Below, piece by piece: positions 566 to 63,999 of a stretch of DNA of 64,000 bases. The stretch's first letter is position 1, and each line of letters starts with the position of its first letter. The DNA is taken from sequence record MK250027.1. The stretch is one strand, 5' to 3'. The notes under the pieces are model-generated. The model was not told where the DNA came from, did not search any database, and saw only the letters and a list, made by a program, of their open reading frames with translations. A program made the translations under genes and the position numbers.

Positions 566-612
566 AATTTTTATATTTTAAATTATTATTTTTAATTGTT
601 ATTTTTATAATA

Positions 613-621
613 CAAAGATAC
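613..621 (-). promoter_or_regulatory. Bacteroidetes-type -7 promoter element GTATCTTTG (host-RNAP, early type)
   Basis: Matches TAnnTTTG; intergenic and pointing at the downstream gene; one of nine GTATCTTTG copies. Confidence 0.7.
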
Positions 622-643
622 ACATTTTGTTTTAAATAAAAAA

Positions 644-30209: not shown

Positions 30210-30262
30210 CTAAATAAAAATTAAAAAGATTCATAATTATTTTTTTAATTAAAAAAGAATGT

Positions 30263-30271
30263 GTATCTTTG
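30263..30271 (+). promoter_or_regulatory. GTATCTTTG promoter upstream of a non-coding structured region
   Basis: TAnnTTTG match with no ORF downstream. Confidence 0.65.
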
Positions 30272-30285
30272 TATTGTAAGAAATA

Positions 30286-30411
30286 AAAATAGTGATACAA
30301 CCTATAAGCCATAGGTAACATGAGTTCGGTAACCTCATGGTTCGTAAGTCGTGATAACGAATAGTCTCGGTAATAGTTGAAAAACCTTCATCGGTTATGT
30401 ATCATTATTTA
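30286..30411 (+). ncRNA. multibranch structured ncRNA candidate
   Basis: AAAATAGTGATACA / TGTATCATTATTTT closing stem; hairpins ACCTAT/ATAGGT, CATGAG/CTCATG, TTCGT/ACGAA. Confidence 0.55.
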
Positions 30412-30615: not shown

Positions 30616-30713
30616 GGTTATGTTACATAATGGTTAATGAGGTATCTAATTGATATTTTAATATCAATGGAAGAAAGGTATTGCGGTGACGGGTTCGAGT
30701 CCCTCCATAACCA
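30616..30713 (+). tRNA. tRNA-like gene with a hairpin insertion in the anticodon loop (anticodon not assignable)
   Basis: GGTTATG/CATAACC acceptor stem; CAT-AATGGTTA-ATG D arm; GGG-TTCGAGT-CCC T arm; 30-nt loop containing TTGATATT/AATATCAA. Confidence 0.55.
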
Positions 30714-30934
30714 CTCCTTATAATAATGAAAAGGATGCAATTATCTAACATAGATATTATTATAGTATAAGAAATTATGATAATTCTTAAAATGATAATC
30801 AAGAGATTGAAGTAACTAATTAATGTATAGTTACTAAGGCGAAAGTATAACTGCAATTATATTAGTAGTTGGCGTTTAAAAGATTGAAGAAAATTATTTG
30901 CAGATAATTTTTGGATTGATATTAAATGTAAAAA

Positions 30935-31026
30935 TTATAATAGTGTAGCGGGAATGCACGTTCGATGATAAATCGGAAAGGGATTAACGGTATGACGTTA
31001 TTAAGGGTTCGACTCCCTCTTATAAA
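30935..31026 (+). tRNA. atypical class II tRNA-like element (long variable arm, non-canonical anticodon loop)
   Basis: TTATAA/TTATAA acceptor; GTGT/GCAC D stem; TTCGA-TGATAAA-TCGGA; TAACG/CGTTA variable hairpin; AGGG-TTCGACT-CCCT T arm. Confidence 0.5.
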
Positions 31027-31033
31027 CAAATTT

Positions 31034-41926: not shown

Positions 41927-42280
41927 ATGAAAAGAATTATTAATATAAGACCATTATCAGAAAATACAATAAGGAAATCTTTTGGTACTTCATTAGAAGA
42001 TAAACTGAGAGAATTAAGAGATGAAGTAAAGGATAGTAGATTACTTGAAGATACTTTAGTATTTCAGATAGGTAGGGAAGTATATACAGATAATGGTACA
42101 AGATATAAATTATTGGGAGGTCATCTATCATACCAGGAAATGGGATTAACATAGATGGACCAACAGTTATATAGTAATATTGTTTCAGGTAAAACTGATG
42201 TTGATACAGTGCTATATAACTGGAAGAATAAAAAGGTTAAAAAATTGAACTTTTCTTCAAGAAAAACATAGAAAAAGTAA
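41927..42280 (+). CDS. TAG-recoded hypothetical protein (117 aa, 2 TAG)
   Basis: Track ORF 41927-42154 extended through TAG to TAA 42278. Confidence 0.7.
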
Positions 42281-42283
42281 AAT

Positions 42284-42326
42284 AAAATGGTGAATATTTA
42301 ATTTTATGTTAAATATTCACCATTTT
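42284..42326. terminator. bidirectional terminator
   Basis: AAAATGGTGAATATTTAA / TTAAATATTCACCATTTT. Confidence 0.8.
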
Positions 42327-42328
42327 TA

Positions 42329-42770
42329 TTAATATGTAGATAATTCTTGTGTAAATGTACTTAATGCATCATCTATAGATGAAAACTCTCCAAATGATAC
42401 TTCTGTATCAGGATCAGAAAATACTTCAAATTCGAAATCTATTTTATCAACAGGGCCAACGGCTAATGTATATGTTCCATTATTATTCTATTGAATAGTT
42501 AAATGACTATTTTCTCCTCCACAAAAATCATCGAATTTCTATTGTAAATTATAATTATTTGCAAATATTCTCAATAATGATTCTGGTTCTCTATGTGTAC
42601 CTTTTGAACCTCTCATAATTCTAACTTCAGATGAATTAAAATATGATAAAATTATTTTCTTTAAATTATTTAATAGGTATATTAGAGTTTTCATTAAGCG
42701 TTCTTTTTACAGTTTTTGAAACAGATTTCATTATAGATTCATAAAGTGATTTCTTTTGATTTTTATTCAT
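42329..42770 (-). pseudogene. leader-bearing gene split by a frame change (34-aa leader ORF + 121-aa TAG-recoded ORF)
   Basis: MNKNQKKSLYESIMKSVSKTVKRTLNE... stops at 42666; overlapping frame from ATG 42694 runs to TAA 42329 with 2 TAG. Confidence 0.5.
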
Positions 42771-42853
42771 AGTAATTATTTATATTTTAATTTTCATTTA
42801 TATATTTATACTGAAAATATAATTATAAAAATCCTATGTCTTTATTTACATAA

Positions 42854-43291
42854 TCAAAATAGTGCTTCACATTTATTCTCTTTTATCGGGCACCAATTCT
42901 CAAAATCCCATTTGAAAAAATCAGTACATATAATATTATGATTTATAATATCTGTTATTTTATCTGTAATTTCAAAATTATATTTTTTTATTAGTTTTAT
43001 TAATCTTTCTTTTAATTCTTCTGTATTATCATCCATTAATTCTGTTGCATAACATGTATTTATTGCATTTTCTACATCTGAAATATTATTACAATTTTTT
43101 AATCTTTGTTCAACGACATATAAAAATATATTACCTATACCTGCGCAAGGGTCTAAAAAAGTTTTAGAGAAATCTGTAAATACTTCTGGTGTTTCTTCAC
43201 ATAATTTTTCAACTATATGTATTGGCGTAAAATCTTCTTGTGTTATATGATGTCGTTCTTTTCGTTTTTGATTTATATCTTGCTATAACAT
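42854..43291 (-). CDS. N6-adenine methyltransferase SAM-binding subunit (145 aa, TAG at codon 3)
   Basis: EDFTPIHIV and FLDPCAGIGN (motif I); extends track ORF 42854-43036. Confidence 0.8.
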
Positions 43292-43338
43292 TATAAATAT
43301 TATTAATTTCTAATTATTTATATTAGAGAATATTCATA

Positions 43339-43842
43339 TTGTTTATTTGTAAGGGTTATGGTGATATGATGAAGGATCATATTTATAGAGAAGGAATTAC
43401 AAAAACAAATAATAATACTCACTACTGTTTTTTTGCAGATATATGTGCAATAACAGGTCATGGCAATGAAAAAGCAATGTTATCTAATACTGCATATAAA
43501 GTATGTAAATATGGCGAATATTTAAATAGATATACTGAAACACTTTGTCGATTAAGTAATACAGATACTTATAAAGTATATGGTACTAAAGATGAATTAG
43601 AAAATTGGAAATATTTTGTTTTTAATAATAAATTACCATTATTTCTTAATATCGTGTTGACAATAAATCAGCATAATAATTCAAAAGACTATGTACCATG
43701 GTTTACTAATAAAAAATACACAGATAGTGAAATATATAAAATATTAAATATTAATAATATTGAGCAATTATTAATTAACAAAATAATAATTAAGTTTGAA
43801 AGAAATAATACATGGTTTAAAAGATATATAATAGGTATGTGA
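43339..43842 (+). other. silent inverted alternative C-terminus (TRD cassette) of the adjacent methyltransferase
   Basis: Begins at CKGYGDMMKDH, the same sequence as residue 258 of 43858-45204; no N-terminal domains. Confidence 0.8.
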
Positions 43843-44433
43843 TCTATTATATATCTTTTATTTTCCGCATATATATCGTTTAAACCAATTTGAATTTCTT
43901 TCGAATTTTTTAATTATATTATCCATAAATAAGATTTCATCATTATTAATATTTAATATTTTATATATTTCACTATCTGTGTATTGTTTATTTACAATCC
44001 ATGGCATATATTGTTTAACAACATTATTTTGATTAATAATTAAACATATATTAAGAAATAATGGTAATTTATTATTAAAAACAAAATATTTCCAATTTTC
44101 TAATTCATCTTTAGTACCATATAAACAATCAGCTATTTTATTAGTTTGATGTTTACCTTTATCATATTTAAAGGGTTTAATGTTATTTATATTATTCATA
44201 TAATAATGAAAACAAGGTGATGTATATGAAGTAATAAATGAACCATATTTATGATTACAAAAATTTGATTCAGCTTCAAATTTTCCACCAACTTGTGAAG
44301 ATTCAATACCACATAAGCTTCCACCTGTTCCTCCAAGTATTTCTGGATATTTACAGTAATAAGTATTATTATTTGTTTTTGTAATTCCTTCTCTATAAAT
44401 ATGATCCTTCATCATATCACCATAACCCTTACA
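43348..44433. repeat. three nested perfect inverted repeats: 72 bp (43348-43419/44362-44433), 76 bp (43577-43652/44048-44123), 44 bp (43715-43758/43942-43985)
   Basis: Base-by-base manual comparison. Confidence 0.92.
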
Positions 44434-45204
44434 CTTATTTAAAATACTTTGTATAATATCATAATTACCGATAAGATTACAATCATTTATATTATCAACA
44501 ATTTGTTTATCACCACAATTAATAAATTCAATATTATTAAATTCTTGTGAATTATCTATAAAAGTTATTGAACATGGAACATATTGTGAAATATTAAATG
44601 ATTTATTATAATTTTCAATTATAATTTTTTTAACATGGTTTTTAATACGATTTTTTAAGGGAATATACCATTTTTTATTATTTGGTATATCTTTTCTTAA
44701 ATTAATAAGCCATGTAGATGGCTCAATAATTGTCATTTTCCCATTATTATTTAATATATCTAATCCCTTATTAAAAAATTCTAAATGTAAATTTGTATTT
44801 CTATTTGGTCCAACATAAGGTGGATTCTGAATAATATAATCAAATTTAGGCATATTTTTTATATTTAATTTTATATAATTAAATATATTTTCTGCATCAT
44901 ATATATTTGTATATTTTAAATAATATATATTTTTACATATTTTACTATATTCTTTATATGTTTTTAGCACAAATATATTAAACATTTTATTAATTAAATT
45001 ATCAATATAATTATAATCAATATCATTAAATGTTAAAAATACAATTTTACCATTATTATCATATAAATATTTTTTTAATGTAATAGTTTGTTCAATAAAT
45101 TCAACAGAATCTATTGTTCCAAATAAATTATTAATTTTATGTAAAATACATAAACATGTTTTTACATTATTAAAATTTGATAATTCAGAAAATATTTTAA
45201 TCAT
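43858..45204 (-). CDS. Eco57I-like adenine methyltransferase catalytic/TRD subunit (448 aa)
   Basis: FDYIIQNPPY (motif IV), LEFF, GKMTIIEPSTW; no FxGxG motif I seen. Confidence 0.85.
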   Translation of the reverse strand: MIKIFSELSNFNNVKTCLCILHKINNLFGTIDSVEFIEQTITLKKYLYDNNGKIVFLTFNDIDYNYIDNLINKMFNIFVLKTYKEYSKICKNIYYLKYTNIYDAENIFNYIKLNIKNMPKFDYIIQNPPYVGPNRNTNLHLEFFNKGLDILNNNGKMTIIEPSTWLINLRKDIPNNKKWYIPLKNRIKNHVKKIIIENYNKSFNISQYVPCSITFIDNSQEFNNIEFINCGDKQIVDNINDCNLIGNYDIIQSILNKCKGYGDMMKDHIYREGITKTNNNTYYCKYPEILGGTGGSLCGIESSQVGGKFEAESNFCNHKYGSFITSYTSPCFHYYMNNINNIKPFKYDKGKHQTNKIADCLYGTKDELENWKYFVFNNKLPLFLNICLIINQNNVVKQYMPWIVNKQYTDSEIYKILNINNDEILFMDNIIKKFERNSNWFKRYICGK

Positions 45205-45215
45205 AGTTATATTAT

Positions 45216-45950
45216 TTATACTTTATATTTTATAATATTATCTATTGTTTGTTTAAATTCTTCCCAGAAATCATAATCATTTATATAATCATTTATAGTA
45301 TTTCCATCGATAATTATGAGGTTTTCATATAAAGAATTATTTTCAAATGCTCTTTTATATTCATTATAATAAGCGGATGTAAATAATATTAATGTTTTGT
45401 CTTTTGTATTTTCTGGTGTAATAGGTTTAATAAATCCATTTTTTGTACCTTGTGCTAATAATTTATCCATTATATCTGCATGAATATCAAATTTTTTGGA
45501 TGTTCTAAATTTTACTTGTATTACTCCATTTTTATTTTCTCCTAAACCTCTTCTATTTAATAAACATACAGCATCTACTCCATAATCTTTATAACTTTCT
45601 GGTGGTAAACATATATATTTAAATATATATGTTTCTACAGTATCTTTATCTTTTACGTGAATACTTATACTTTTAAAATAATTTAAAAATATAATACAGA
45701 ATAATTCAAAAATATATCCTTTAAATTGTTCTTGCTCATCAATTATATTATTTTTTATTAATATATTATTTGTATATTCTGTAAAATCATCTATTGTATT
45801 AAATGATGTTATATCAGATAAATATTTTATATTTAATATTATATTTAATATTTTTCGAGGTATACTTGTACTTTTATTTCTATACGTACTTTTATCTCTC
45901 CATCTTTTCAAAAAATTATCAAATGCATATAATTCTTTAATATTAATCAT
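45216..45950 (-). CDS. Mrr-like PD-(D/E)XK endonuclease (244 aa)
   Basis: KGYIFELF...DYGVD...IQVKFR. Confidence 0.7.
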   Translation of the reverse strand: MINIKELYAFDNFLKRWRDKSTYRNKSTSIPRKILNIILNIKYLSDITSFNTIDDFTEYTNNILIKNNIIDEQEQFKGYIFELFCIIFLNYFKSISIHVKDKDTVETYIFKYICLPPESYKDYGVDAVCLLNRRGLGENKNGVIQVKFRTSKKFDIHADIMDKLLAQGTKNGFIKPITPENTKDKTLILFTSAYYNEYKRAFENNSLYENLIIIDGNTINDYINDYDFWEEFKQTIDNIIKYKV

Positions 45951-47608
45951 ATATCTATATTATTCTGTTTAAGAACTTCTTTAATTACATTAAGTCTATC
46001 TGTTTCATTAAATAAATTTAATGTATTTATATTTGTTGATAAAGTAGCAAAATTACACATTTTATATATACTATTTAAATTTATATATCCACCATTTATT
46101 TTTAATTCTTTAACAACAGGAATAATTCTATTTTTAAGTTCTTCTTGCAAATTTAGTTTTAATTCATCTATACGTTGTTTAATTTCTATGATTGGCGATT
46201 TTTCCTTATAATCTGTTGTATTATAATTATCATATCGTTTTAATGGATTTTTTGGATGTGAAATATTATCAGATATATTATCATATAAAATATTATCTAT
46301 ACCATAATATTCAACAATTGTACTTGATATATTTTTATTATATTCATCATTACCATTAGATACTATATATACATTAGCGAATTTTTTAATTCTATCATTA
46401 TATGATTTCCCTCTTTCTCCTGAGTTTGTTCTCAAGCAACGACCAATTATTTGTATAATTCTATTTTTTGAATCGCTATCACCATTTGTATTATTGACTA
46501 TAATGCAATCAGATATTGATTTAATATCAATCCCTTGAATAAGTTTTCGACAATGAAATATTATACAATTATCATTATATGAATCTACTTTATTACAAAA
46601 ATCATTAATTTCGTAATCATCATCAGATGTATTTTTAAAACATTTATAATATTTTGAACATTTATTGTATAATTCTGTTGCTTGCTGTCTACTAAAACAT
46701 GTAACTAATAATTTATTATTTTTTGTATTTTTTGATTTAATAGCATCATTCATACAGGCAATTATAATTTTATCAGTAATAATACCATTTGAAGTGATAT
46801 TAAATTTTACATATGGTTTTATTATAATATTATCTTTAATTGCATTATCTGCAGATATATTTACAATACGTTCATCTTCTGGAACGTTTATTTTACCTGA
46901 TAATTTATTTTTATTTATAATATTATTAAATAGTTTTACAAAAATACTTGGTGTTGCAGAAAAACCATATAATTTATAACTATTTTTTACTAATTTATCA
47001 AAATTTATATTATTTGAAAATAAATTTGTAGTATTATCTATTACAGTATGACATTCATCAATATATGTAATTAAATCTACTTTCTTTTTATTAATTTTTA
47101 CATTATCAATAAATTTATATAATGATTTATTACATGATGAAACTAAAGCAATATCATAATCGCTATTTTCAAAATTATCTAATACAGTCTTAGACGATTT
47201 TGAATTATTATATAATTGATAAATTTCTATATTATTATTAATATTATCATTTACAGGTTTTTCATATATTCTTGTTTCATCTGATGAATTTAATATTAAT
47301 AATAATTTATAATTATTTAATACATTATTACATTTTCCTAATACATTTAAAAAATCAGTAAATGTTTGGACATTTAAATTTAATATGTGTGAACATATAC
47401 AAATAATAAGTTTCTTGGATGCCTTTTTATTTTGTATATTGTATATACAATCATCAAATATATATCCAGATTTCCCATATCCAGTAGGCATAACAACTGT
47501 ACCAAAATTCCTACCAGTAGATGCAATAATATCAATTTTTCTTAATCCATTATTAAATGAATCTATATACCATTGCATTTTATTGTCTATATTATTTGTT
47601 GTATTCAT
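45947..47608 (-). CDS. superfamily 2 helicase/translocase, ResIII-like (553 aa)
   Basis: MPTGYGKS, IDECH, SATP, LIQGIDI, QIIGRCLR. Confidence 0.88.
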   Translation of the reverse strand: MNTTNNIDNKMQWYIDSFNNGLRKIDIIASTGRNFGTVVMPTGYGKSGYIFDDCIYNIQNKKASKKLIICICSHILNLNVQTFTDFLNVLGKCNNVLNNYKLLLILNSSDETRIYEKPVNDNINNNIEIYQLYNNSKSSKTVLDNFENSDYDIALVSSCNKSLYKFIDNVKINKKKVDLITYIDECHTVIDNTTNLFSNNINFDKLVKNSYKLYGFSATPSIFVKLFNNIINKNKLSGKINVPEDERIVNISADNAIKDNIIIKPYVKFNITSNGIITDKIIIACMNDAIKSKNTKNNKLLVTCFSRQQATELYNKCSKYYKCFKNTSDDDYEINDFCNKVDSYNDNCIIFHCRKLIQGIDIKSISDCIIVNNTNGDSDSKNRIIQIIGRCLRTNSGERGKSYNDRIKKFANVYIVSNGNDEYNKNISSTIVEYYGIDNILYDNISDNISHPKNPLKRYDNYNTTDYKEKSPIIEIKQRIDELKLNLQEELKNRIIPVVKELKINGGYINLNSIYKMCNFATLSTNINTLNLFNETDRLNVIKEVLKQNNIDI

Positions 47609-47651
47609 AATCCTTTATATTTAATTGTTTATTATTCATTTATTAATAATG

Positions 47652-47660
47652 CAAAGATAC
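47652..47660 (-). promoter_or_regulatory. GTATCTTTG promoter of the R-M-like operon
   Basis: TAnnTTTG match upstream of the helicase. Confidence 0.7.
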
Positions 47661-47680
47661 ATATTATTTTCTAAAATAAA

Positions 47681-47710
47681 AAATGATAGATTAGAAAATC
47701 TATCATTTTA
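47681..47710 (-). terminator. intrinsic terminator
   Basis: AAAATGATAGATT / AATCTATCATTTT. Confidence 0.7.
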
Positions 47711-47717
47711 ATATTAT

Positions 47718-48185
47718 TTAAGAAAGAAATACTTTATAAATATCTTTCGCTAATTTATTTCTATCTTCTTCATTATTAATAAAGTTAGTCATGATATAAT
47801 CTATCAATCCTTCATAACTATGAAAATTAACACTTCTAATTCTCATAATTTCTTTTACTTGCTCTTCATTCAGATATTCATCCATAATCCAATCAAACAA
47901 TGCTGGTATATCATCAGGTTTCATAAAATTAATAATGATATTAAAATAACTCGCATCTAACTCAATAGCTCGGTTACAAAATGAACTGTACTTACCGTAA
48001 TTTCCATTTTTGAAATCTTCTTCACTCAACGGGCCTTCTCCGGTAAGTCTTCTGGAAACTACATATCGCCTAATTGCCTTGTTCATATCCTTTATAGACT
48101 TATTCATTCTCAAACCATCATCATTCTTATCGATGAGTTTCTGAACTCTATCAAAATCTTTTTTCTCTACATTAGTGTAAATCAT
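47718..48185 (-). CDS. hypothetical protein (155 aa), distant relative of the 9252/39832 N-terminal domain
   Basis: KAIRRYVV...FCNRAIELDAS compared with LLNRYVAA...FGHRILDLGGT. Confidence 0.7.
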   Translation of the reverse strand: MIYTNVEKKDFDRVQKLIDKNDDGLRMNKSIKDMNKAIRRYVVSRRLTGEGPLSEEDFKNGNYGKYSSFCNRAIELDASYFNIIINFMKPDDIPALFDWIMDEYLNEEQVKEIMRIRSVNFHSYEGLIDYIMTNFINNEEDRNKLAKDIYKVFLS

Positions 48186-49352: not shown

Positions 49353-51296
49353 TCAACCTTTAATATTTTGTATAATCTTATCCCGTTCTTCTTTCGTTAT
49401 TATAACAACATATTCTTTATTGGAACCAAAATGAGATCTGTTTGTCAACGTTTCTTTTATATATGGCACATATTTTGTAATCAAATCATCTGTCACAAAC
49501 AAATATTTCTGACAATCATAATTCTTAAGACAAATATCTATCCATCTGTCACATCCTCTGTTAACAGACTCTACTCCAGGCCAATTTTCAATATTTCCAT
49601 ATGGCGAACATGTCAACAAACATTGGTATTTACCAGTATTCTTACAACAATCTGCAATTCCTAAATCACATGTAACATTAACTAATAAATCAGAATCAAT
49701 TATAGGTTTCAAAAACTTATATATCTCCTTACTTTCCTTAACACTTGATTCACATAAATCTCTACCTATATATGATTTATTACATGCCAATGTTCCTATC
49801 ATTCTTCCACTATATCCCGAGAACGGATCAAATATTGTATCAAATTCATTAAGATATTTCTTTATAAGATATTTTGCTAAATCCGGTTTGAAATATGTAA
49901 CAGTCTGAAACATCCTAGATGCATTCAATCCAATTCCATATATAAAATCAGGAACATAACATAAATCAATATATTTCCTATGTTCTTCTGATTTATACCA
50001 ATCAGCAAATTTCAATCTATTACATAATAACTTCCTGAATAATTCCTTATCATTTTTAATCATATTCCATCCATCAAAAGGTGAAACACTATTTTCAATA
50101 TGTGCATATATAATAGACTTATGAAACATCTTAATAATCTTGGATGGTGTCTTCAAATTCCTATCCTTTGATTTTATATATTCAAATTCCTTGATACAAT
50201 CTAATTCTGTAACAGGATGAACAGTAGAAGGTGGGAAATATATATTCTGAATTTTTTCAAACTCTCTATCTAAATACTTATCGACAATCTCATTAACATG
50301 TGCGGATGTAGCATTAGCGCTCTTACACATATTTTCTTCTGTCTCTTCTTCACCGTTAATCAATACAGGTTTGTATTTAGGCTTACTTAATAAATCAGAT
50401 ATAGGTGTATTCTTATCAACTATTTTTTCTTTTTTCTTTTCTGATTTAATATCTAAACTATTTGTCTCAGTCTTAATAGGAAATACATCATTGATACTTG
50501 ATGTTTTTTTCGTTTCCTTATCCTTATTATGAATTGATTTCTTTAATTTCTCCTGCTTTTCTTTTTCTATATCAATCTTATCTTGTTTCTCAATAATCTC
50601 ATTTATATTATCATCAACAGTATACTTAATCAATAGTGTCGGAATATATTTAAATCTTGGAGCCTTACTGGAACAACTTGTTGAACAATATTTAGTATAC
50701 AACTTTGTATTCTTACCAACCCAAATAACAGGTTTTCCACATACGGGACATGTAGGTTTTTCTTCTACGCCTTTCCTTATTCGTTGAACAGTTTCCAATA
50801 TAGATGCAGAATCTTTATATCTATTATTAAGATAATCCAATATGTACTTATTAGTAATCAATGGAACATATTTATCATATATGATATGATTCTTAATAAT
50901 ATAATCATTCATTTCATCTAATTCAGTAATTGAATTCTGCCAATCTACGAATTTTGAATCCCTGTGTTTAGCAATCTCAAAACTATCCTTGTATTTTTCA
51001 CGAGTCATAGAAGCATGCATCGCTTTACATATATAAGATCCACATGTAGTTTTGTATCCGTTTCCTATACGTCCACTCCATTCTGCTTTCTTACTGCAAT
51101 ACTTACATGTTACTATCTCATGCAAATCATGAATAACATAATAAAGTCTCTCTAATATATCTTCATCATTCTTTAAAAAATCTGTAAACTCATATACTTC
51201 TTTATTAATATCTTCATGATTTCTAACTATATATATTAATTGTCTTAAACTTATTTCATTATTATTATATTGCTTTATATAATCATTTAATTGCAT
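49353..51296 (-). CDS. Zn-module repeat protein fused to a C-terminal SAM-dependent DNA methyltransferase-like domain (647 aa)
   Basis: Two CxxC...C...C modules; IFDPFSGYSGRMIG (motif I-like), YIGRDL, LLTCSPY (SPPY-like). Confidence 0.7.
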   Translation of the reverse strand: MQLNDYIKQYNNNEISLRQLIYIVRNHEDINKEVYEFTDFLKNDEDILERLYYVIHDLHEIVTCKYCSKKAEWSGRIGNGYKTTCGSYICKAMHASMTREKYKDSFEIAKHRDSKFVDWQNSITELDEMNDYIIKNHIIYDKYVPLITNKYILDYLNNRYKDSASILETVQRIRKGVEEKPTCPVCGKPVIWVGKNTKLYTKYCSTSCSSKAPRFKYIPTLLIKYTVDDNINEIIEKQDKIDIEKEKQEKLKKSIHNKDKETKKTSSINDVFPIKTETNSLDIKSEKKKEKIVDKNTPISDLLSKPKYKPVLINGEEETEENMCKSANATSAHVNEIVDKYLDREFEKIQNIYFPPSTVHPVTELDCIKEFEYIKSKDRNLKTPSKIIKMFHKSIIYAHIENSVSPFDGWNMIKNDKELFRKLLCNRLKFADWYKSEEHRKYIDLCYVPDFIYGIGLNASRMFQTVTYFKPDLAKYLIKKYLNEFDTIFDPFSGYSGRMIGTLACNKSYIGRDLCESSVKESKEIYKFLKPIIDSDLLVNVTCDLGIADCCKNTGKYQCLLTCSPYGNIENWPGVESVNRGCDRWIDICLKNYDCQKYLFVTDDLITKYVPYIKETLTNRSHFGSNKEYVVIITKEERDKIIQNIKG

Positions 51297-51425: not shown

Positions 51426-53081
51426 ATGAACACTATTCAAGAAATATTTACCAATGATATAATAAAAGGATTAAAAGAAACTTATATAATAGATAATGAA
51501 ATAAAATCAAAATCATTAATTAAAAAATCTGTATTTAATAAATTTCCTGAATTTTATAATGTATATAAACAACATTTTTCTGAAGATGAATTCAGAGAAA
51601 TACTTTATTGTATATTAAAAGATATTCCTACTATACCTAAATGTAAAAATCCTAATTGTAACAATAACACGAAATTACGGAATTTCAAAATAGGATTTCA
51701 ACAATGTTGTTGTAAAGAATGTACAGCAGAATATCAACATTTGTCTAATGAGCATGCTGATAAATGTAAACAAGGTGCATTGAAACATTATGTCAATATA
51801 CATAAAGTAGATTCATATACAGAAAATATGAACTGTGATTATTCAAAACCAAATTATTATATATTCAATAATTATTGTATTCATGGTAATATACCGGTTT
51901 ATAAAACTACGGCAAATAAAATACATGAATATAATAACGGAACATTCTGTATTCAATGTAACAAAAACATAATAGATACATATATACCTACAGAAAAAGA
52001 AATAAATGAATTCCAAAAGATATTTCCTGAGTTTTATAAGAAATATTCACATAATATGAAATATAAATGGTGGTTAACTTATTTTCCTAAATATTATAAA
52101 ATTCTAATAACTTATTTTGAAAAATATGTAGAACCAGTTAATGATAATATAGTTATGAAAGAAGTATATTATCAATTTCTTCATGATTTAAAAGGAAGAC
52201 CACATTGTTGTATATGTGATACTAAAGTTTCATTTTCACCAACAGCAAATGAATATAGAAAATTCTGTGATAAACACTTATATGGATTTAATAAATCATC
52301 TCAAGAAATAGAATTAGGAAAATTTATTGATTCATTAAATTTAAATGTAATTAAAAATACACAAGATATTATTAAAGGTGAATTGGATTTTTATTTTCCT
52401 AATAATAATGTTGCTATAGAATATAATGGCTGTTGGTGGCATTCCGATAAATTTAAAACAAAAAATTACCATTATAATAAATGGAAACAATGTAAAGATA
52501 AAGGAATTCAATTAATATTCATATGGGAAGATGATCTCTTATATAAAAGAGATATAGTATATTCACTTATTAAATCAAAATTAGGAATATATAATATCAG
52601 AATATATGCAAGGAAAACAATAATTAAAGAAGTTCCTTATAATATAGCAAAAGAATTTATAAATAAAAATCACCTTCAAGGATATTCGATAGATAAAATA
52701 CGATTAGGACTTTATTATAATGATGAATTAATTTCAATAATGACATTTGGTAAATCCAGATTCAAATCTGATAATGATGATATAGAGATAATAAGATTTT
52801 GTAATAAACTTAATTATCAAATAATTGGAGGCGCCAGTAAATTATTTTCACATTTTAAAAAACATTATGATTATAAAAATATTATCAGTTATGCAGAATG
52901 TGATATATCAAACGGTAAACTTTATGAGAATCTTGGAATGACTTATATAAGCAGAAGTGATAATTGGAAATGGATGTATAAAGGAATAAGATATAATAGA
53001 TTAAATAAAATTAAAGATTCTGAACATAAACAAGATTTAGTTAAATGTTATAGTGCAGGAATTTTAAAATATAAATTATAA
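51426..53081 (+). CDS. homing-endonuclease-like protein (551 aa): Zn modules + DUF559/Vsr-like nuclease + Hef-like C-terminus
   Basis: ELDFYFPNNNVAIEYNGCWWHS, IFIWEDD, RIYARK, HLQG, RFCNKLN, GGASKL. Confidence 0.75.
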   Translation: MNTIQEIFTNDIIKGLKETYIIDNEIKSKSLIKKSVFNKFPEFYNVYKQHFSEDEFREILYCILKDIPTIPKCKNPNCNNNTKLRNFKIGFQQCCCKECTAEYQHLSNEHADKCKQGALKHYVNIHKVDSYTENMNCDYSKPNYYIFNNYCIHGNIPVYKTTANKIHEYNNGTFCIQCNKNIIDTYIPTEKEINEFQKIFPEFYKKYSHNMKYKWWLTYFPKYYKILITYFEKYVEPVNDNIVMKEVYYQFLHDLKGRPHCCICDTKVSFSPTANEYRKFCDKHLYGFNKSSQEIELGKFIDSLNLNVIKNTQDIIKGELDFYFPNNNVAIEYNGCWWHSDKFKTKNYHYNKWKQCKDKGIQLIFIWEDDLLYKRDIVYSLIKSKLGIYNIRIYARKTIIKEVPYNIAKEFINKNHLQGYSIDKIRLGLYYNDELISIMTFGKSRFKSDNDDIEIIRFCNKLNYQIIGGASKLFSHFKKHYDYKNIISYAECDISNGKLYENLGMTYISRSDNWKWMYKGIRYNRLNKIKDSEHKQDLVKCYSAGILKYKL

Positions 53082-53083
53082 TT

Positions 53084-54781
53084 ATGGAATTAAATTTAGA
53101 TGAATATAGAAAAGATTTCAATATAAAAAGATTTAATAATTTATTACGATACCATGAAGATTTATTAGATACATTAAAAAAGAAAACATCATTTTTAGAT
53201 GAACATAATCCGGAGAAATCTGAACGTGTATATTGTTGGTATAATAATATAACAGAAATTCAAAAATGTCCTCATTGTGGTAAATCTAGAAAATTCCATA
53301 AATTTCCTGTTGGTTATTTTCCTACATGTGGTACAAAGGAATGTAGAGCAAAATCAGTTGCATATGGAAATAAATATCACCATGACTTTAAAGAAATTCA
53401 GAAAAAGATGAGAGAAACATATGCGAAAAATCATAATGGAATTACACATAATATGCAAGATCCTGAATTTAAGAAAAAATTCTTTGAAGATTTTAAGAAG
53501 AAACATAATGGTGCATCATGTGGTGTTCAAACAGAATTAGCAAATAAGAATAGAGAAAAATCAACATTAGAAAAATATGGTGTTAAATGTGCATTAGAAT
53601 CAAAGGAAGTTCGTAATAAAATATATGAAAAATATGGGAATAATGCACATAAAGTAATTACTGATAAATCAGCAAAAGCTAGAAAAATAAATTCATTAAA
53701 TGATATTATTAAAAAAATATCAGAAATGAATTATACATATATTTCTAATAATAATGATACATTTCAAATTAAATGTAATAAATGTGGTCATATAAATGAA
53801 ATTAATAGACAAGCAATAAATTATTATTACAGAAATATAAAGCATATATATTGCAATAAATGTGAATATAAAGAATTAATGTTTAGGAGTAATTTTGAAA
53901 AAGATGTTGTAAATGAAATTGGTAAATTAATAAAAGATACAAAATATTCTATATTAACTAATAAACATATTTATAATGGTAAGGAACATTATGAAGTAGA
54001 TATATTAATTCCTGAATTAAATTTAGCAATAGATTGTAATGGTTTATATTGGCATTCTGAATTACAAAAATCAGATAATTATTATCATTATAAAAAGAAA
54101 GAATTTATAGAAAAATTAGGTTATTCTTTAATTTNNNNNNNNNNNNNNNNNNNNNATGATATTAATAAGAAAGAAATTATATTAAGTCGTTTATCTAGTA
54201 AATTAAAATTAAATAAACATGTATATGCAAGAAAATGTATAATTAAAGAATTAACTCCTAAATTATATAGAGATTTTTGTAATGAAAATCATTTACATGG
54301 ATCTGTTAATGCATCTATAAAAGTTGGATTATATTATAATAATGAATTAGTTGAAGTAATAGGATTAGGTAAATCTCGAAACTTAATAGGACATAATAAA
54401 GACACTGTTTCATATGAGCTATTACGTTTATGTACAAAAAAATATATTAATGTTATTGGTGGTTTTTCTAAATTAATGAAATATATTATTACTAATTTTA
54501 ATATATCATCTATATATAGTTATGCTGATTTATCATGGATTGATTTAAAAGGATCATCATATATTAATAGTGGATTTATTATAGATAAAATAATAGATAA
54601 TGAATATTGGTGGGTAGTTAATAATATAAGAGAAAATCGTTTGAATTATACTAAAAATAAATTAGTATCATTAGGATATGATAAGAATTTAACAGAAATA
54701 GAAATTATGCATTCATTAAAACATTATAGAGTATTCGGCCCTGGTAATTTAAAATTTATATATAAAAAGAAAAGTCTCTAA
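53084..54781 (+). CDS. homing-endonuclease-like protein (565 aa), paralog of 51426; spans a 21-N gap (54135-54155)
   Basis: EVDILIPELNLAIDCNGLYWHS, HVYARK, HLHG, LRLCTK, GGFSKL. Confidence 0.72.
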   Translation: MELNLDEYRKDFNIKRFNNLLRYHEDLLDTLKKKTSFLDEHNPEKSERVYCWYNNITEIQKCPHCGKSRKFHKFPVGYFPTCGTKECRAKSVAYGNKYHHDFKEIQKKMRETYAKNHNGITHNMQDPEFKKKFFEDFKKKHNGASCGVQTELANKNREKSTLEKYGVKCALESKEVRNKIYEKYGNNAHKVITDKSAKARKINSLNDIIKKISEMNYTYISNNNDTFQIKCNKCGHINEINRQAINYYYRNIKHIYCNKCEYKELMFRSNFEKDVVNEIGKLIKDTKYSILTNKHIYNGKEHYEVDILIPELNLAIDCNGLYWHSELQKSDNYYHYKKKEFIEKLGYSLIXXXXXXXXDINKKEIILSRLSSKLKLNKHVYARKCIIKELTPKLYRDFCNENHLHGSVNASIKVGLYYNNELVEVIGLGKSRNLIGHNKDTVSYELLRLCTKKYINVIGGFSKLMKYIITNFNISSIYSYADLSWIDLKGSSYINSGFIIDKIIDNEYWWVVNNIRENRLNYTKNKLVSLGYDKNLTEIEIMHSLKHYRVFGPGNLKFIYKKKSL

Positions 54782-54827: not shown

Positions 54828-56831
54828 TCAAAGACCTGCAACATCTACACAGAATGTAAGATATTGTGTTTCTGGATAGAAACCAGCGTCTACAAGAGCA
54901 TATCTTGATTTTATCATAAGCTTAGGACTCATTGTACCTTCTGCAATAATCTGAACTGATTCAGCCATTACATATGGACAGAAGTGAACACCTGGTTCAT
55001 CCTTGCCACCCTTACGACCAACAAGTACACGGTTATCAGAACCACCCATAAGAGGGTCAACATAGATTGTCAAACCGAACATACCACCGATTGGATAAAG
55101 TGAACCGCCATTCTGAGAAATAGTGTTAGCAACAGGTGAGAATGTATAGTTAGCGTTACTCTGAAGGAGTGTAGCGATTGTGATGTTAGTTACAGCGAAT
55201 GTAGCTGCACCATAACGACCTCTCTGAAGAATCCAGTTAGAAGCAGCCAAGAAGTTAACAGCAAGTCTCTTAAGAAGAGTATCACGGTTTTCGAAAGCTG
55301 CGCCAGAAGGAATATACATTGGCTTGTATGGAAGAGCAACATTTACATAGCTCTTATAAGCAACACCAGTTGCATCATTCATATCTGACTGAGGAATTGC
55401 AAGAGCAGGAGTCATACGAACACCAGAAGTTGCAGTATAAGAAGGATCGAAGCTAAGATTCAAGTTAGCTGCAGGACCTTCAACCTCAACAAGTTTGTAA
55501 TGGTTCTTCCAACCAAGAGCGAACAAACGAGATGTGATGTGACGGTTAATAGTTGCAGAAAGCTCGTTGATACCAGCATTCTCTACCATCTTGATAACAT
55601 CGATACCCCATTGTTTCTGAAGGTCTGTTACCTGTTCCTGTGTTACAGCGCAACCCACCATAATTGTACCAACCTGTACGTTCTTTGTGAACAACTGAAG
55701 TGAAAGTTGACGAGCCATTGTTTGCTCACCAGTACCACGACTCATTGGTTCATAAAGTGTTGTACCATCCTGATATGTACCATACCAAGCGTCACGATCA
55801 CGCTCACCAGCACCTGTGAAACCTTGAATTTGATCCTCAAGCATTGAGATAAGACGAGGAGCGTGAAGTGTAAGAACTACATTTACTTCCTCAGAAGAAC
55901 CAACTGGAGTATAAACTGCAGTAAAATCAAGTGAACCACCATTGAAATATGCACCAAGTGACTGTGTACCAGAAACCACCTTGAACATAGGATCACCATC
56001 GATACGAGACCAACCAATGAACTCAACTACAAGTTCGTTAGAAGCACCTACATGTGGATGAGAAGAATCGAAATCTACAAAATCAGATGCAGATACAAGT
56101 GTTGTACCAGCAGGCATTGCAGAAGCACCCTTCAACATACGCTTAATCTGTGCAGGAGACAACTTAACAGCAGTAGAAGAATCTGTTGTAGAACCATCAG
56201 CAACAGTAGCCTCACCAGGAGCAATAGAAGCCTTGAATGAATGAGGAAGACCATACATCTCGAAAGGAGCGTTAGTCTGAGAGTTAGCCTGAGGATTCTG
56301 TGTACGAGCTGAATAAGCAGGAGTAGCACCATAAGGTTGCTTTGAACCTGAATATACATAATCCATATAAGGAAGAACACCGGTAGGACCATCAAGTGGA
56401 GTTGTGTTTACAAGTTCGAAACCGATAGTCTTAGCAGCGACCTTAAGAGCAAGAGGTAACAAAGTAGGATACTTGTCACCAGAACCAAGGTTCTTGTTAT
56501 CAGCGTAGTCAGCGCCAGTCAAAGCAGGTTTGCCAGCAGGAACTGGATCACCAACACCGAGTGTATTATAAAGGTTGTTATATGGTTGATATGTACCACC
56601 GAACTGTGAATATGCGTTAGATGGCATTACGAATGCATCCTCATTCAACTTTGCTGTATTATGTGCAAGCTGAGACATCCAAGCAAGTTTATCAGCATCT
56701 TCAACACCTGTGATTTTCTTAATAGTAGGTGCCCATGATTCATAGATAGCTTTGTCGCTATTCTTAGCAGTTGCACGATTTACATATGATTCGTAAGCCT
56801 ATGCAACAGACTTATTACTTTTTACTTTCAT
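54828..56831 (-). CDS. major capsid protein, T4 gp23-like (667 aa with TAG at codon 11)
   Basis: PLDGPTGVLPYMDYVY, TIYVDP, FCPYV, EGTMSPKLMIKSRYAL; ATG 56831 MKVKSNKSVA(TAG)AYES is in frame with track ORF 56678. Confidence 0.9.
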
Positions 56832-60477: not shown

Positions 60478-63400
60478 TTAAACTAAAATTCTTATTGCAT
60501 GCTTTGGTAACTATGTTAATTTACCACCTACTGTACAATCAACTAATCCTGTATCATCTGTTGTATCAACATATGATTTTGGATTAACTTTTATTTTACG
60601 TAATGGTTCATCATTTTCAGAAGCAATAACAGCATTTATCCAATCTTCAACAGGAATGTCTATATTGTCTTTATGCCATGTTTCTTCATTACCATCAACA
60701 TAAACTCTTACATCATCTACGCCTTCTAGAATATCTTTAAGATTTGCCTTGAATCTTTTACCATTTAATGTATTAGTTAAAACTTGTGAGTCTACAACTA
60801 TATTGCATTCAACAGTTTTACCATTCAAATCATTCATCTTTTCTGCTTTAGGATTTTCTGGTGTTTTATTCAAGTTATTCTTATCGAATTCAAATTGATC
60901 TGGCGTATTGTCAATGTCTTTGAATTGAGACGGATCTGGTTTAATCTCATTTGAAGTTACATCAATAGTTTTACCATTTTTTGTAATCTTCAACTTTTGT
61001 TTATCACCAGTTTCTTCTTCAACTGCATATACAGTCCATGGTTCATTCTTATAAAGAATCTTATCATTTACCTCATATTCAATAATTGCGCCTTCCTCTA
61101 AGAAAGGATTTTTCTTTTGTTTTTCAGTTACAAGATTAACATTAGGAAGTTTTGGTTTCACTGCTTCATTTTCATCCTGTTGTGGATCTAATGCTCCAAC
61201 TAAACCGTCTTTCTTTTGTTTATCTTCGATTTCCTATTTAAAATCGTTATCTTCTTGCGTACCATATTTAGCATCATTTGCAGCTTTTGAATTATCAAGA
61301 TCATTATCAGCGTCAACCTTTGTTGAACGTTTAATCTTACAATTCTCATTTATATACTTATTATTAGCGTCATATGATTTCCCTGTTAATGCGCTGAATA
61401 TAGAAGAAACAACAAACATACAATCATCAGTATCAGTTATATTATAAGATGTAAGTTGTTCACCCTTATCTGAATAATCAACTTTTAAAGACTCTATTGT
61501 TTGTCCAGGAACTTCATCTTTGAAATCTTCTAATATTTGATAAAATTCTTTTGCATCCCTGTAATAAATATCTGCACCAATTTGATATATTGCATATGAT
61601 TCAGAATCACCATCATACTCTTCTGATATTACGAAATACTTTACAGTATCTGAATCTTCACCATAAGAATCAATATCTGTAACAATTATATTATGTTCAT
61701 CATTAATTGCTTTTTCTGCAGACTTTATTGCTTTATCATGCATTTTACCTAATGTATCAAAATCTGTTTCTTCATTATAATCTTCTATTGGATCATTACC
61801 TTTAGAATCGGATGTAGAAATCTCGTTTGTGGTACTTCCATCAATTATCTCTTCTGTGAGAGGAGCACCTTTCTAATCCTTTGATTTAGAAGCCTTGATG
61901 GTAGCTTCATTTAAGAAAAAACTTTTACCTGCTTTATTTTTGAATACAGGTGTAATCTTGATAGATTTATGTTCTTTTAAAGGTTTCTTATCAGTTTTTA
62001 CTACTTTCTTTTCTGGTATCTCTGTACCATCAGCGGAAGGTGCTGGTAATTCAATCTCAGTATTACCTGATTTATATGTTGGAATAATTACATCTTCATC
62101 GTCTGAATCTTCATCGTCTGAATCTTCATCGTCTGAATCAGCATCATCTACTTCCTTCATATTAAAACCAAAAGTATCATCGTCATCAGAATCATCTTCA
62201 TTTGATTCTTCATCATCTTCCATTTTACTTAAAGGATAATCCCACTCCCAATCATCATCGTCATCATCAGAATCAAGTTTCTGTGAAAATACATCACGGT
62301 CTTCATCATTACCGTCTCTTAAATATGCATCTTCCCAATCTTCATCATTGTCATCATCTGAACCACGTAAAGCGGCAATTGTTGGACCAACTTCCTCATT
62401 TGCAGGTTCAGCAGTATCACAAATAGATGTATAATCAGGATGTCCCTTAATTGCGTCGATAACAGCGGCATAAAGTTCATTAGTCATAGGTTCGTTATCA
62501 AGAATAGGATTATTGTTATCATCAAGATAGAATTCTATAGTCTTGTTCTCTACATACTTCTTACCTGTGCCATCAATCATAGGAACGATTACGATAACAG
62601 AACCTGATTTTTCTTTCTTACCTTCCTTAACATTCTCATCAAACATTACATCTGCAATCTTATAAGAGAATTTAGGTTGGTATGCATCTTCTTTTTCTTC
62701 TTCCTCTGTTTTAGGTGTATTCTCTGGATTTTCTTCAACATCCGTATTTGTTCCAAGAGGATCTTCTGTATCGCCACCAAATACATCTGTAGCTTCGTCA
62801 CCTGGTTCAGCAACTTCATCATCAGACGTTTCATCATCTGTACCCATATCAACAGTTGTCATACCTGTATTTTCAGGTTCATCCTCATCAGAAGTGTCAC
62901 CAATAGTATCATCTTCAGAATTCATTTCATCATTATCTTCATCAGAAATTGTATCATCTTCTGTTTCTTCTGGTTCGAAAATATCGTCATCGTCCTCTGA
63001 ATCAATTGAAGAATTATTATCGTCATCGAAACTTACTTCCTTAAATGCTTCTTCATCATCTTGATCATTATCATCATCAGAAGTAAACATATCTTCATCT
63101 GAATCTTCATCATCTGAATCCTCAAAATCTGGTTCATCTTCTGTTTCATCATTATCAGCATCTATTGCATCTGCGGCAGCATCATCAAAACCAGTACCAT
63201 CTTCCTCTGAATCTTCATCATCAGAATCACTACCTAAGAACTTAGCGAATTCATCATCAGATACTCTATCATCAGATTCATCAGACTCCTCATCACTAAA
63301 GTTATCAGTTGCTTCAGAATCTCCATTTTCTCCACTTAACGGTTGTGAAAGTTCATCTTTATTCGCGTCAACTTCATCATCAGACATTGGTTCATTTGGT

Positions 63401-63999
63401 TTTTCCTTAGTTACAGAACCATCATTTGTATCATCATCTGTATCTTCTGTATCCGCTTCTGAATCAGTATCTTCATCATCTGAATGATCTTCGCCTGTTG
63501 CATCATCTGCTTGTTTTTGCCATTCTTTATATTCAGCTTTAATATCATCAAGTTTCTCTTCTGCGTCAGAAATAGCTTTCTCAAGTTTCTCTTTATTTTC
63601 ATCAGAAGCAGACTCAAGAGCCTTATTAAGTTTATCAATCATATCTTCATATTTCTCGATAGAATCTTCATATTGATTCTTTGTCTCATTAAGTTTAAGA
63701 ATGATCTTATCTTGAGATGGAAGCAAATCACTAAACAATGAAGATACATTAATACCCATATGTTCATTCAACTTATTCTTGCAGAAAATAGGATTTACAT
63801 TTCTATAGAATGTATGTTGTCCAATAGCATCGTTATGAGTTGCAATGAAAATATTTTGGTCAAGTCTAAACAAATCCGCATTAATATTATTATTCTCATT
63901 AAGAGTTACATGCTTTGCCCAATCAATCTTTGCGATATTATTAAAGTTCTCCAAAAGGCATGAACACATAATATAGAAGTTTGTATCGTAATCATCATA
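60478..63999 (-). CDS. giant acidic TAG-recoded protein, N-terminus outside the window (>1173 aa, 3 TAG); candidate head core/scaffold protein
   Basis: Track ORFs 61873-63969, 61234-61743 and 60511-61161 are in one frame joined by TAGs; long D/E-rich tract, coiled coil, several LxE motifs. Confidence 0.8.

Follow-up and report, generated by a model that had tools for sequence, protein, structure and literature searches.

Programmed inversions that alter the specificity of DNA methylation are known in bacteria. In the Type I hsdS invertons of S. pneumoniae (SpnD39III/ivr), Bacteroides fragilis and Mycoplasma pulmonis (hsd), one expressed specificity gene is accompanied by silent inverted partial copies, several repeat pairs give combinatorial specificities, and some inversion persists without the local recombinase. 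The phenomenon is no longer known only for hsdS, since gene-altering inversions have been published for bacterial Eco57I-like/Type IIG methylases, BREX PglX and DISARM DrmMI (Milman et al. 2023, PMC9881135). In these loci a methylase with a fused recognition domain is altered by inversion against partial inverted copies, nested repeats allow an internal part to be swapped through two inversions, and a helicase is often next door. They are bacterial chromosomal defence systems, usually with an adjacent recombinase, and the authors name viruses as unexplored. Phage-borne invertible segments, such as the G segment of Mu (Gin) and the C segment of P1 (Cin), would also exchange the C-terminal part of an expressed protein with an oppositely oriented spare copy and thereby give two types of progeny, but their target appears to be a tail fibre, with one repeat pair, short crossover sites and an adjacent Hin-family serine invertase with its enhancer. 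In the R64 plasmid shufflon (Rci), multiple repeats allow several C-terminal variants of a pilus adhesin, probably through 19-bp sites and a dedicated tyrosine recombinase; PilV shufflons are listed in PMC9881135.

The locus described here lies in a 64-kb stretch of DNA (64,000 nucleotides, hereafter the window) which equals Prevotella phage Lak-B8 (MK250027.1, 551,627 bp) at identical coordinates. It resembles the Eco57I-like systems in that a methylase gene faces an inverted partial copy of its own 3' part, but it is carried by a megaphage genome of virulent type and no recombinase is adjacent to it. In contrast to the hsdS invertons, where the recognition domains lie on a separate HsdS subunit with two half-sites, a single recognition domain is here fused to the methylase. 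We found no report of invertible methylase specificity in a phage.

Anatomy of the locus and its two orientations

The features of the locus are collected in the table below. The earlier note, which had described three identical nested blocks in a methyltransferase gene and in an opposed silent copy, is correct in all its coordinates and numbers. The three block pairs are the only exact inverted repeats of 25 bp or more in the window, whereas the longest repeat in 20 first-order Markov simulations was 16-20 bp. The V1 stretches of the gene and of the cassette cannot be aligned with each other. All eight combinations of the three inversions give open frames, of 448 aa or 421 aa for the gene and of 158 aa or 185 aa for the cassette. 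The alternation of identical blocks with blocks that cannot be aligned and differ in length led us to reject a diversity-generating retroelement, in which template and variable repeats differ at adenines only.

Features of the methyltransferase locus in the Lak-B8 window
Feature	Position	Strand	Size	Description
Accessory island	42360-47600			Holds the whole system
SF2 helicase	45947-47608	-	553 aa	First gene of the presumed operon
Mrr-like PD-(D/E)xK nuclease (predicted from fold)	45216-45950	-	244 aa
Gamma-class N6-adenine DNA methyltransferase (predicted)	43858-45204	-	448 aa in this state	Expressed gene; C-terminal target-recognition domain
Motif IV, NPPY	44815-44826	-		Residues 127-130
Inverted cassette	43339-43842	+	167 aa	5'-truncated spare copy of the recognition-domain modules; in-frame Met-Met at 43366
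B1, copy in the gene	44362-44433	-	72 bp
B1, copy in the cassette	43348-43419	+	72 bp
Segment bounded by B1	43348-44433		1,086 bp	Invertible segment
B2, copy in the gene	44048-44123	-	76 bp
B2, copy in the cassette	43577-43652	+	76 bp
Segment bounded by B2	43577-44123
B3, copy in the gene	43942-43985	-	44 bp
B3, copy in the cassette	43715-43758	+	44 bp
Segment bounded by B3	43715-43985
V1, long form	44124-44361	-	238 bp	Currently expressed
V1, short form	43420-43576	+	157 bp	Currently in the cassette; expressed in Lak-B7
Inverted arms	43818-43860		17 bp	Across the two converging stop codons
Small ORF	42854-43291	-	145 aa	TAG at codon 3

The product that the earlier note had predicted for inversion at the outer repeat exists in nature. 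Inverting the B1-bounded segment in silico makes the window identical to the published sister genome Lak-B7 (MK250026.1), with 0 differences in 7,524 bp against 377 as is, and Lak-B7 encodes a 421-aa methylase together with a 185-aa cassette that is letter for letter residues 264-448 of the window gene. Lak-B2 and Lak-B8 are in the window's state. The exact window-state cassette protein lies on 12 contigs and the inverted-state cassette protein on 3 contigs, all of 0.2-1 Mb. Only two of the eight states were seen in the Lak-B2/B7/B8 lineage.

Relatives about 80% identical keep the same layout, which is found in the contigs numbered L006-L019, L026, L027 and L031, and their near-identical genomes provide evidence for exchanges at the other repeats. 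Inversion of L016 at B2 gives L014, with 2 differences in 1,893 bp against 133 as is, their upstream 2.5 kb being 100% identical. Inversion of L006 at B1 and then at B2 gives L018, with 18 differences in 1,948 bp against 246. The last module, V3, is exchanged reciprocally between L008-L012 and L013, but less cleanly: inversion at B3 explains the swap between L008 and L013 and leaves 38 differences, and the cluster of differences at the truncated contig end shows L013 carrying the same V2 type on both sides, which may be a chimera or a conversion, so that we use this case only as supporting evidence. The cassette is intact in every lineage, and its frame is open along its whole length in the window and in 13 distinct cassette ORFs in public data that start at the same Met-Met. 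The two copies of B1 are 97-100% identical within a genome but only 79-89% identical between lineages, which indicates concerted evolution.

The island itself is polymorphic. In the near-identical phage record G001, the flanks are 99-100% identical but the stretch is replaced by 1,458 bp holding one 508-aa helicase, a real presence/absence polymorphism. Among GenBank phages only Lak-B2, B7 and B8 carry the methylase, and Lak-B4 has a different three-gene module in the same place.

Predicted functions of the encoded proteins

The methylase matches the Pfam Eco57I profile PF07669 at 27.1 bits (cut-off 25.3) and phrog_3689, a DNA methyltransferase family, at E 3e-7, and its NPPY motif is invariant in 70 aligned homologues. 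Its structure model (pLDDT 91) aligns over both domains, a Rossmann catalytic domain followed by a C-terminal recognition domain, with M.TaqI (Z 12.6, model residues 1-406), CamA (Z 11.7, 1-419) and M.BseCI (Z 11.1, 1-424). Sequence identity with these monomeric enzymes is only 10-18%, and none of them seems to have exchangeable modules. The SAM-binding motif I is degenerate in the lineage of the window, which has lost most of the glycines of the Gly-rich loop present in the family consensus, and the activity of the enzyme is therefore unproven. The variable part lies in the C-terminal domain aligned with the DNA-recognition domains of the three enzymes: V1 covers a beta-rich part of this domain and is hypervariable across 116 family clusters, while the residues after it are conserved.

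The helicase scores 31.9 bits with Pfam ResIII, with weaker DEAD and Helicase_C hits, and belongs to a widespread viral helicase family in the ESM Atlas; it found no match among PDB sequences. It overlaps the next gene by 4 nt. The 244-aa protein was identified only by its fold, since Pfam, NCBIfam, PADLOC and PHROGs found nothing. The best match of its model (pLDDT 79) among 48,161 PDB representatives is the N-terminal nuclease domain of the Type ISP enzyme LlaBIII (residues 12-169; Z 8.4, which is borderline for this aligner, rmsd 3.5, 136 residues), followed by AspBHI and MspJI, and all top matches are PD-(D/E)xK nucleases. Structure matches in the Atlas to Mrr_cat_2 clusters have TM 0.57-0.67, and D126 and Q145-V146-K147 are invariant.

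A model of recombinational switching and its alternatives

The model we propose, which we consider likely, is a recombinational specificity switch of the shufflon type. The catalytic domain of the methylase is kept fixed, while its C-terminal target-recognition domain is built from three modules (V1, V2, V3) separated by three scaffold-coding blocks (B1, B2, B3), and a presumably promoter-less, 5'-truncated inverted copy holds alternative modules between identical copies of the same blocks. Recombination between a block and its inverted twin flips the DNA between them and exchanges everything downstream of that block, so that up to eight in-frame enzymes are possible. The exchange would be carried out by general homologous recombination, by the RecA-like protein of the phage or that of the host, acting on identical repeats of 44-86 bp that gene conversion would keep identical. 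The large V1 module would set the methylated motif; this change of motif is inferred, and without read data the switching is deduced from the comparison of assembled genomes only. The phage population would thereby hedge its bets against the differing restriction systems of Prevotella hosts, or re-target the neighbouring helicase and nuclease.

Phase-variable methylation specificity is regarded as a bacterial bet-hedging device, and here the same logic appears on the phage side of the restriction-modification conflict, in an uncultivated 550-kb phage of a major gut genus, the evidence having sat unremarked in published genomes. If the modules set the methylated motif, one phage lineage could produce progeny pre-adapted to hosts with different restriction systems, or could re-aim its own nuclease, which would bear on host range, on the persistence of megaphages across animals and on the use of methylation motifs in metagenomes to link phages to hosts. 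The locus also gives a natural set of exchangeable recognition modules on a fixed catalytic scaffold, and general recombination on repeats of 44-86 bp seems to be enough without an invertase.

A first alternative concerns the role only and is compatible with the inversion mechanism. The helicase, the Mrr-like nuclease and the methylase might act together as a split Type ISP-like or Type I-like restriction-modification system, inversion changing what is cut as well as what is methylated. The three genes are tightly packed or overlapping, and in the same order in every relative down to about 47% identity, including Wendovervirus sonii; the methylase also matches the methylase domain of LlaBIII, at Z 10.4; family members of 1,202-1,267 aa fuse a nuclease and/or a ResIII helicase to this methylase and recognition domain; and viral and bacterial clusters fuse ResIII helicases to Mrr-like domains. 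The parts are the same set as in LlaGI and LlaBIII, where they form one polypeptide in the order nuclease, motor, methylase, recognition domain, whereas the phage has three genes in the order helicase, nuclease, methylase and no evidence that they act together. A complex prediction for methylase plus nuclease gave no verdict (score 0.00) and is evidence neither for nor against binding. The helicase belongs to a very common viral SF2 family, and a 30%-identical helicase stands alone at the same site in G001, so it may be a core gene with an unrelated job. The fusion argument is weak, since the helicase part of the fused relative P0185 is not detectably similar to the helicase or the nuclease of the window. 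Single-chain fusions exist only in distant family members. Furthermore, a phage that switched the specificity of its own restriction enzyme would, by inference, enter the next cell unmethylated at the new sites. We regard this role as tentative. The further possibility that a recombinase-free shufflon keeps re-aiming such a weapon and its matching self-mark, against host DNA or co-infecting rival phages, is not excluded but remains doubtful.

It is less likely that the inversions are catalysed in trans by a site-specific recombinase. Most described gene-altering inversions use a recombinase, and invertases acting on distant sites are known in Bacteroidales (Mpi family, PMC9881135). The remark of the earlier note that no invertase is visible in the window also holds for the complete genome, with one exception: Lak-B8 and Lak-B7 each encode a single PF00239 serine recombinase (79.8-85.3 bits), located at 516.6 kb in Lak-B8, about 78 kb from the locus, which cannot be excluded as the catalyst. 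However, its domain order, an N-terminal HTH and a C-terminal resolvase domain, and its TnpB-like neighbour would be those of IS607 transposases and not of Hin/Gin invertases; its position varies among Lak genomes, and the full copy was not found in Lak-B2, which has the locus. No recombinase lies in the island, the complete Lak-B8 and Lak-B7 genomes have no PF00589 (tyrosine recombinase) match, and no serine or tyrosine recombinase was found in the 416-kb relative (76% complete) that has the cassette. B1, B2 and B3 share no word longer than 7-9 nt, hence no common core site. A RecA-family gene is present, and extensive recent homologous recombination among the nine baboon Lak-B phages is published (PMC6784885).

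It is also improbable that the cassette is translated from its own Met-Met as a free 158-aa or 185-aa recognition-domain fragment that modulates or competes with the methylase. All 12 such ORFs in public data begin exactly at the same Met-Met, and a 75-bp AT-rich spacer separates the cassette from the divergently oriented 145-aa gene, so a promoter region is nearby. The Met-Met, however, lies inside B1 and is present for that reason alone, the fragment lacks the catalytic domain, and no promoter or ribosome-binding evidence was found, in a scan that was uninformative in this AT-rich DNA (71 sites against 75.9 expected).

Still less likely is that the cassette is merely a partial inverted duplicate, the observed events being rare accidental recombinations with no adaptive role and no change of specificity. 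Any pair of long inverted repeats will recombine in a phage with very active homologous recombination, and only the two states are seen in this lineage, without functional data. But the layout is kept across lineages that differ by about 20% in DNA, with every cassette frame intact, the repeats evolve in concert, the variable modules are unrelated in sequence and length yet always in frame, independent reciprocal exchanges occurred at the different repeats in several lineages, and the same cassette V1 types recur as expressed modules elsewhere.

An assembly artefact is very unlikely: although several short contigs end inside the cassette (L012, L013, L015, L019, L020, L028-L030) and two carry the same V1 in both copies (L007, L011), which could be an assembler chimera, the window's state occurs in curated Lak-B2 and Lak-B8 and in independent ENA contigs of 367-412 kb, the inverted state occurs in curated Lak-B7 and two further large contigs, record names suggest assembly k-mers of 119-141 nt, long enough to span a repeat and both of its flanks, and a misassembly would not leave 0 differences and intact frames in both states.

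The inverted arms across the converging stop codons arise from the homologous 3' ends of the two copies and might act as a terminator, which is an inference only. The 145-aa ORF, translated with TAG=Q, resembles the N-terminal SAM-binding part of related full-length methylases, with a local blastp E of 1e-13 to the N-termini of the family members P0192 and P0234, while Pfam found nothing.

Two orientations of the methylase locus in public genomes

An open reading frame of the minus strand encodes a 448-aa protein with an NPPY motif at residues 127-130, and it is faced on the plus strand by an open frame of 167 aa, the cassette, that matches the C-terminal part of this protein. A search for exact matches revealed three inverted blocks, B1, B2 and B3, and between B1 and B2 the two copies differ in length and cannot be aligned. 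These three blocks are the only exact inverted repeats of 25 bp or more in the 64-kb window, whereas the longest repeats obtained in twenty first-order Markov simulations of the window were of 16-20 bp. Every number in the earlier note, which described this arrangement, is therefore correct. The coordinates of the locus and of the other features considered here are listed below.

Coordinates of the features in the window and in the compared sequences
Sequence	Coordinates	Strand	Feature	Size
Window	577-644; 30230-30291; 31344-31384		Copies of the AT-rich element at 78-80% identity	
Window	17966-21970	-	Long frame open only if TAG is read as an amino acid	
Window	30616-30714		tRNA-Ile(GAT)	99 nt
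Window	30934-31027		tRNA-Tyr, anticodon ATA	94 nt
Window	42262-42340		Near-perfect hairpin at the left edge of the island	
Window	42360-47600		Accessory island	
Window	42854-43291	-	ORF with TAG at codon 3	145 aa
Window	43339-43842	+	Cassette, open frame	167 aa
Window	43348-44433		Segment inverted at B1	
Window	43348-43419 / 44362-44433		Inverted block B1	72 bp
Window	43420-43576		V1 module in the cassette	157 bp
Window	43577-43652 / 44048-44123		Inverted block B2	76 bp
Window	43715-43758 / 43942-43985		Inverted block B3	44 bp
Window	43858-45204	-	Methylase gene	448 aa
Window	44124-44361		V1 module in the gene	238 bp
Window	47602-47696		AT-rich element at the right edge of the island	about 95 bp
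Window	49353-51296	-	ORF with weak matches to methyltransferase models	647 aa
Window	51426-53081; 53084-54781	+	Adjacent paralogous genes	551 and 565 aa
Window	54828-56831	-	Long frame open only if TAG is read as an amino acid	
Window	60478-63969	-	Long frame open only if TAG is read as an amino acid	
G001	81500-86000		Region of the island site (L025)	
Lak-B4	42300-47800		Region of the island site (L038)	
Lak-B8	515127-518528		Region of the IS607-like pair (L035)	
L035	1327-1932		HTH-plus-resolvase protein, TAG read as Q	201 aa
L035	1982-3331		TnpB-like ORF	449 aa
L007	6755-7073 and its inverted twin		Perfect inverted repeat	319 bp

The window is identical, at identical coordinates, to the genome of Prevotella phage Lak-B8 (MK250027.1), a circular molecule of 551,627 bp from baboon faeces in Kenya, and it is also identical to Lak-B2 with a 32-35-nt offset. 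A search with the cassette protein returned a 185-aa protein that is letter for letter residues 264-448 of the window's methylase, here occurring as a stand-alone ORF on three contigs of 0.2-1 Mb. One of these contigs is Lak-B7 (MK250026.1, 550,702 bp), in which the methylase gene is 421 aa long. Compared with Lak-B7, the window as it stands shows 377 differences in 7,611 aligned bp; inverted at B1 it shows 0 differences in 7,524 bp, against 262 when inverted at B2 and 310 when inverted at B3. So the same phage exists in both orientations in public data, and the flipped state encodes exactly the 421-aa protein that the earlier note had predicted. The state of the window is carried by 12 contigs, seven of them of 0.2-1 Mb. 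[quoted passage not shown] (PMC6784885), whose main text contains no word beginning with 'methyl', 'inver' or 'restriction' and whose supplements do not mention this methylase or an inversion.

A second group of megaphage contigs, about 80% identical in DNA and 58-65% in methylase protein, has the same layout: a helicase, a 243-257-aa protein, the methylase and a converging cassette of 161-180 aa. Its exact repeats are of 86 and 67-68 bp, plus a shorter third one. In this group, contig L016 inverted at B2 equals contig L014, with 2 differences in 1,893 bp against 133 as is, and their upstream 2.5 kb is 100% identical. Contig L006 inverted at B1 and then at B2 equals contig L018, with 18 differences in 1,948 bp against 246, and this nested pair of inversions swaps V1 alone. 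In contig L013 the last module is exchanged reciprocally with respect to contigs L008-L012, although a cluster of differences at its truncated end stays unexplained. Together with Lak-B8 and Lak-B7, exchanges at all three repeats are thus seen in nature, less cleanly at B3, and all eight combinations of the window's modules are in frame.

The cassette frame is intact in every locus and in 13 distinct cassette ORFs in public data, and for five of these the same V1 also occurs in expressed full-length genes. B1 is 97-100% identical within a genome but only 79-89% identical between lineages, which is the signature of repeats kept identical by gene conversion. Two contigs, L007 (541,941 bp) and L011, carry the same V1 module in both the gene and the cassette, which in L007 forms a perfect inverted repeat; the cause could be a gene conversion that erased one allele, or an assembler chimera from a sample holding both orientations. 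More distant relatives with the same three genes, Wendovervirus sonii (659,950 bp) and a 70.6-kb contig, have no cassette. The switch is therefore an innovation of one sub-clade.

The predicted methyltransferase and its neighbours in the island

Pfam places the 448-aa protein among the Eco57I-type methylases, with 27.1 bits against a cut-off of 25.3. An AlphaFold2 model built from 70 homologues has a mean pLDDT of 91 and aligns over both domains with M.TaqI (Z 12.6), CamA (Z 11.7) and M.BseCI (Z 11.1), and more weakly with MmeI, BrxX, DrdV and the methylase part of LlaBIII, all of which are gamma-class adenine methylases with a C-terminal recognition domain. The Gly-rich SAM-binding loop present in the family consensus is, however, degenerate in this lineage, so that the activity of the enzyme cannot be taken for granted. 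In the model, B1, B2 and B3 code for helices, and V1 (residues about 282-362) is a beta-rich insert. Across 116 family clusters the part that follows V1 is conserved while V1 is not, from which we infer that V1 would carry the sequence specificity. All the V1 variants, although otherwise unrelated, are rich in Cys and His around a Gly-rich stretch, which may be a metal-binding site in the recognition module.

The methylase is the last of three tightly packed genes. The first encodes an SF2 helicase (ResIII), and the second a 244-aa protein whose model (pLDDT 79) best matches the Mrr-like nuclease domain of the Type ISP enzyme LlaBIII (Z 8.4, a borderline value), followed by AspBHI and MspJI. 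Atlas structure matches point to Mrr_cat_2 families and to helicase-nuclease fusions, and a D...QxK motif is invariant. Some distant family members fuse a nuclease and/or a helicase to this methylase and recognition domain in one chain of about 1,200 aa. The parts list thus equals that of a Type ISP enzyme split into three genes, and inversion could then re-target a restriction system. We regard this reading as tentative and less likely than not, since the helicase family is very common in viruses, a 30%-identical helicase stands alone at this site in a near-identical phage, and a self-restricting phage would face an obvious problem after each switch.

The cassette lies head to head with a 145-aa ORF that carries motifs like those of the N-terminal SAM-binding part of gamma methylases. 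This ORF is about 29% identical (E 1e-13) to the N-termini of two full-length members of the same methylase family, ends where NPPY would follow, and is conserved in all the relatives that have the cassette.

The whole block is an accessory island, present, among GenBank phages, in Lak-B2, B7 and B8 only, and its site is a hypervariable slot among near-identical Lak-B phages. In the near-identical phage record G001 it is replaced by a lone 508-aa helicase in 1,458 bp, and in Lak-B4 by a different helicase-led three-gene module without inverted repeats, which encodes a 597-aa helicase plus 286-aa and 463-aa proteins of unknown family. The other Lak-B genomes are 2-5 kb shorter here. The hairpin at the left edge of the island is conserved in G001 and is possibly a terminator that marks the module boundary. 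The AT-rich element lies exactly at the right edge, just upstream of the helicase start, and besides its copies in the window it has copies at eight or more places in G001; it may be a repeated promoter or regulatory element, or a recombination site for exchanging modules.

Mechanism of inversion and known invertible methylases

Invertible specificity is well established for Type I hsdS and was extended by Milman et al. (PMC9881135) to bacterial Eco57I-like and Type IIG enzymes, BREX PglX and DISARM DrmMI. Their cases include nested repeats that need two inversions to swap an internal part, and they name viruses as the next thing to examine. Inversions carried by phages that swap the C-terminus of a protein appear to be classical for the Mu and P1 tail fibres. 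No report of an invertible methylase in a phage or in Lak phages was found in the full-text literature searched, which leaves out most subscription journals. The mechanism and the gene family are known from bacteria; what appears to be new is a megaphage as carrier and the absence of a dedicated invertase.

No recombinase is encoded in the island. The complete Lak-B8 and Lak-B7 genomes have no tyrosine recombinase and one serine recombinase, at 516.6 kb. The latter has an N-terminal helix-turn-helix and a C-terminal resolvase domain and is followed by an ORF with TnpB-like motifs; it lies at different places in Lak-A1, Lak-C1 and Lak-B9, and the full copy was not found in Lak-B2, which does have the locus. 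Such an organisation would be that of IS607 elements and not of Hin/Gin invertases. The frames of this pair contain 5 and 11 in-frame TAG codons, so the element seems adapted to the recoded genetic code of the phage. A RecA-family gene is present, the three repeat pairs share no common core, and extensive recent homologous recombination among Lak-B phages is published (PMC6784885). We therefore favour general homologous recombination on the 44-86-bp repeats, whose lengths would lie above the minimum for RecA-type recombination, and consider the action of a site-specific enzyme in trans to be unlikely, though not excluded.

Genetic code and other genes of the window

The window is 26% G+C and reads TAG as sense in a subset of genes. 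Many long frames, of which three are listed in the table, open only if TAG is read as an amino acid, with 1-11 in-frame TAG each, while the helicase, nuclease and methylase have none; this fits the gene-class-specific stop-codon recoding described for Lak phages. The two listed tRNA genes are both over-long, which fits the intron-bearing tRNAs reported for these phages. The 647-aa ORF, a few kb from the island, has weak matches (E 0.002-0.006) of residues 467-519 to PADLOC Type II methyltransferase models and may be a second methylase-like gene. Finally, the two adjacent paralogous genes next to the major head protein gene both match the PHROG families annotated as homing or HNH endonuclease (E 1e-83 to 1e-88).
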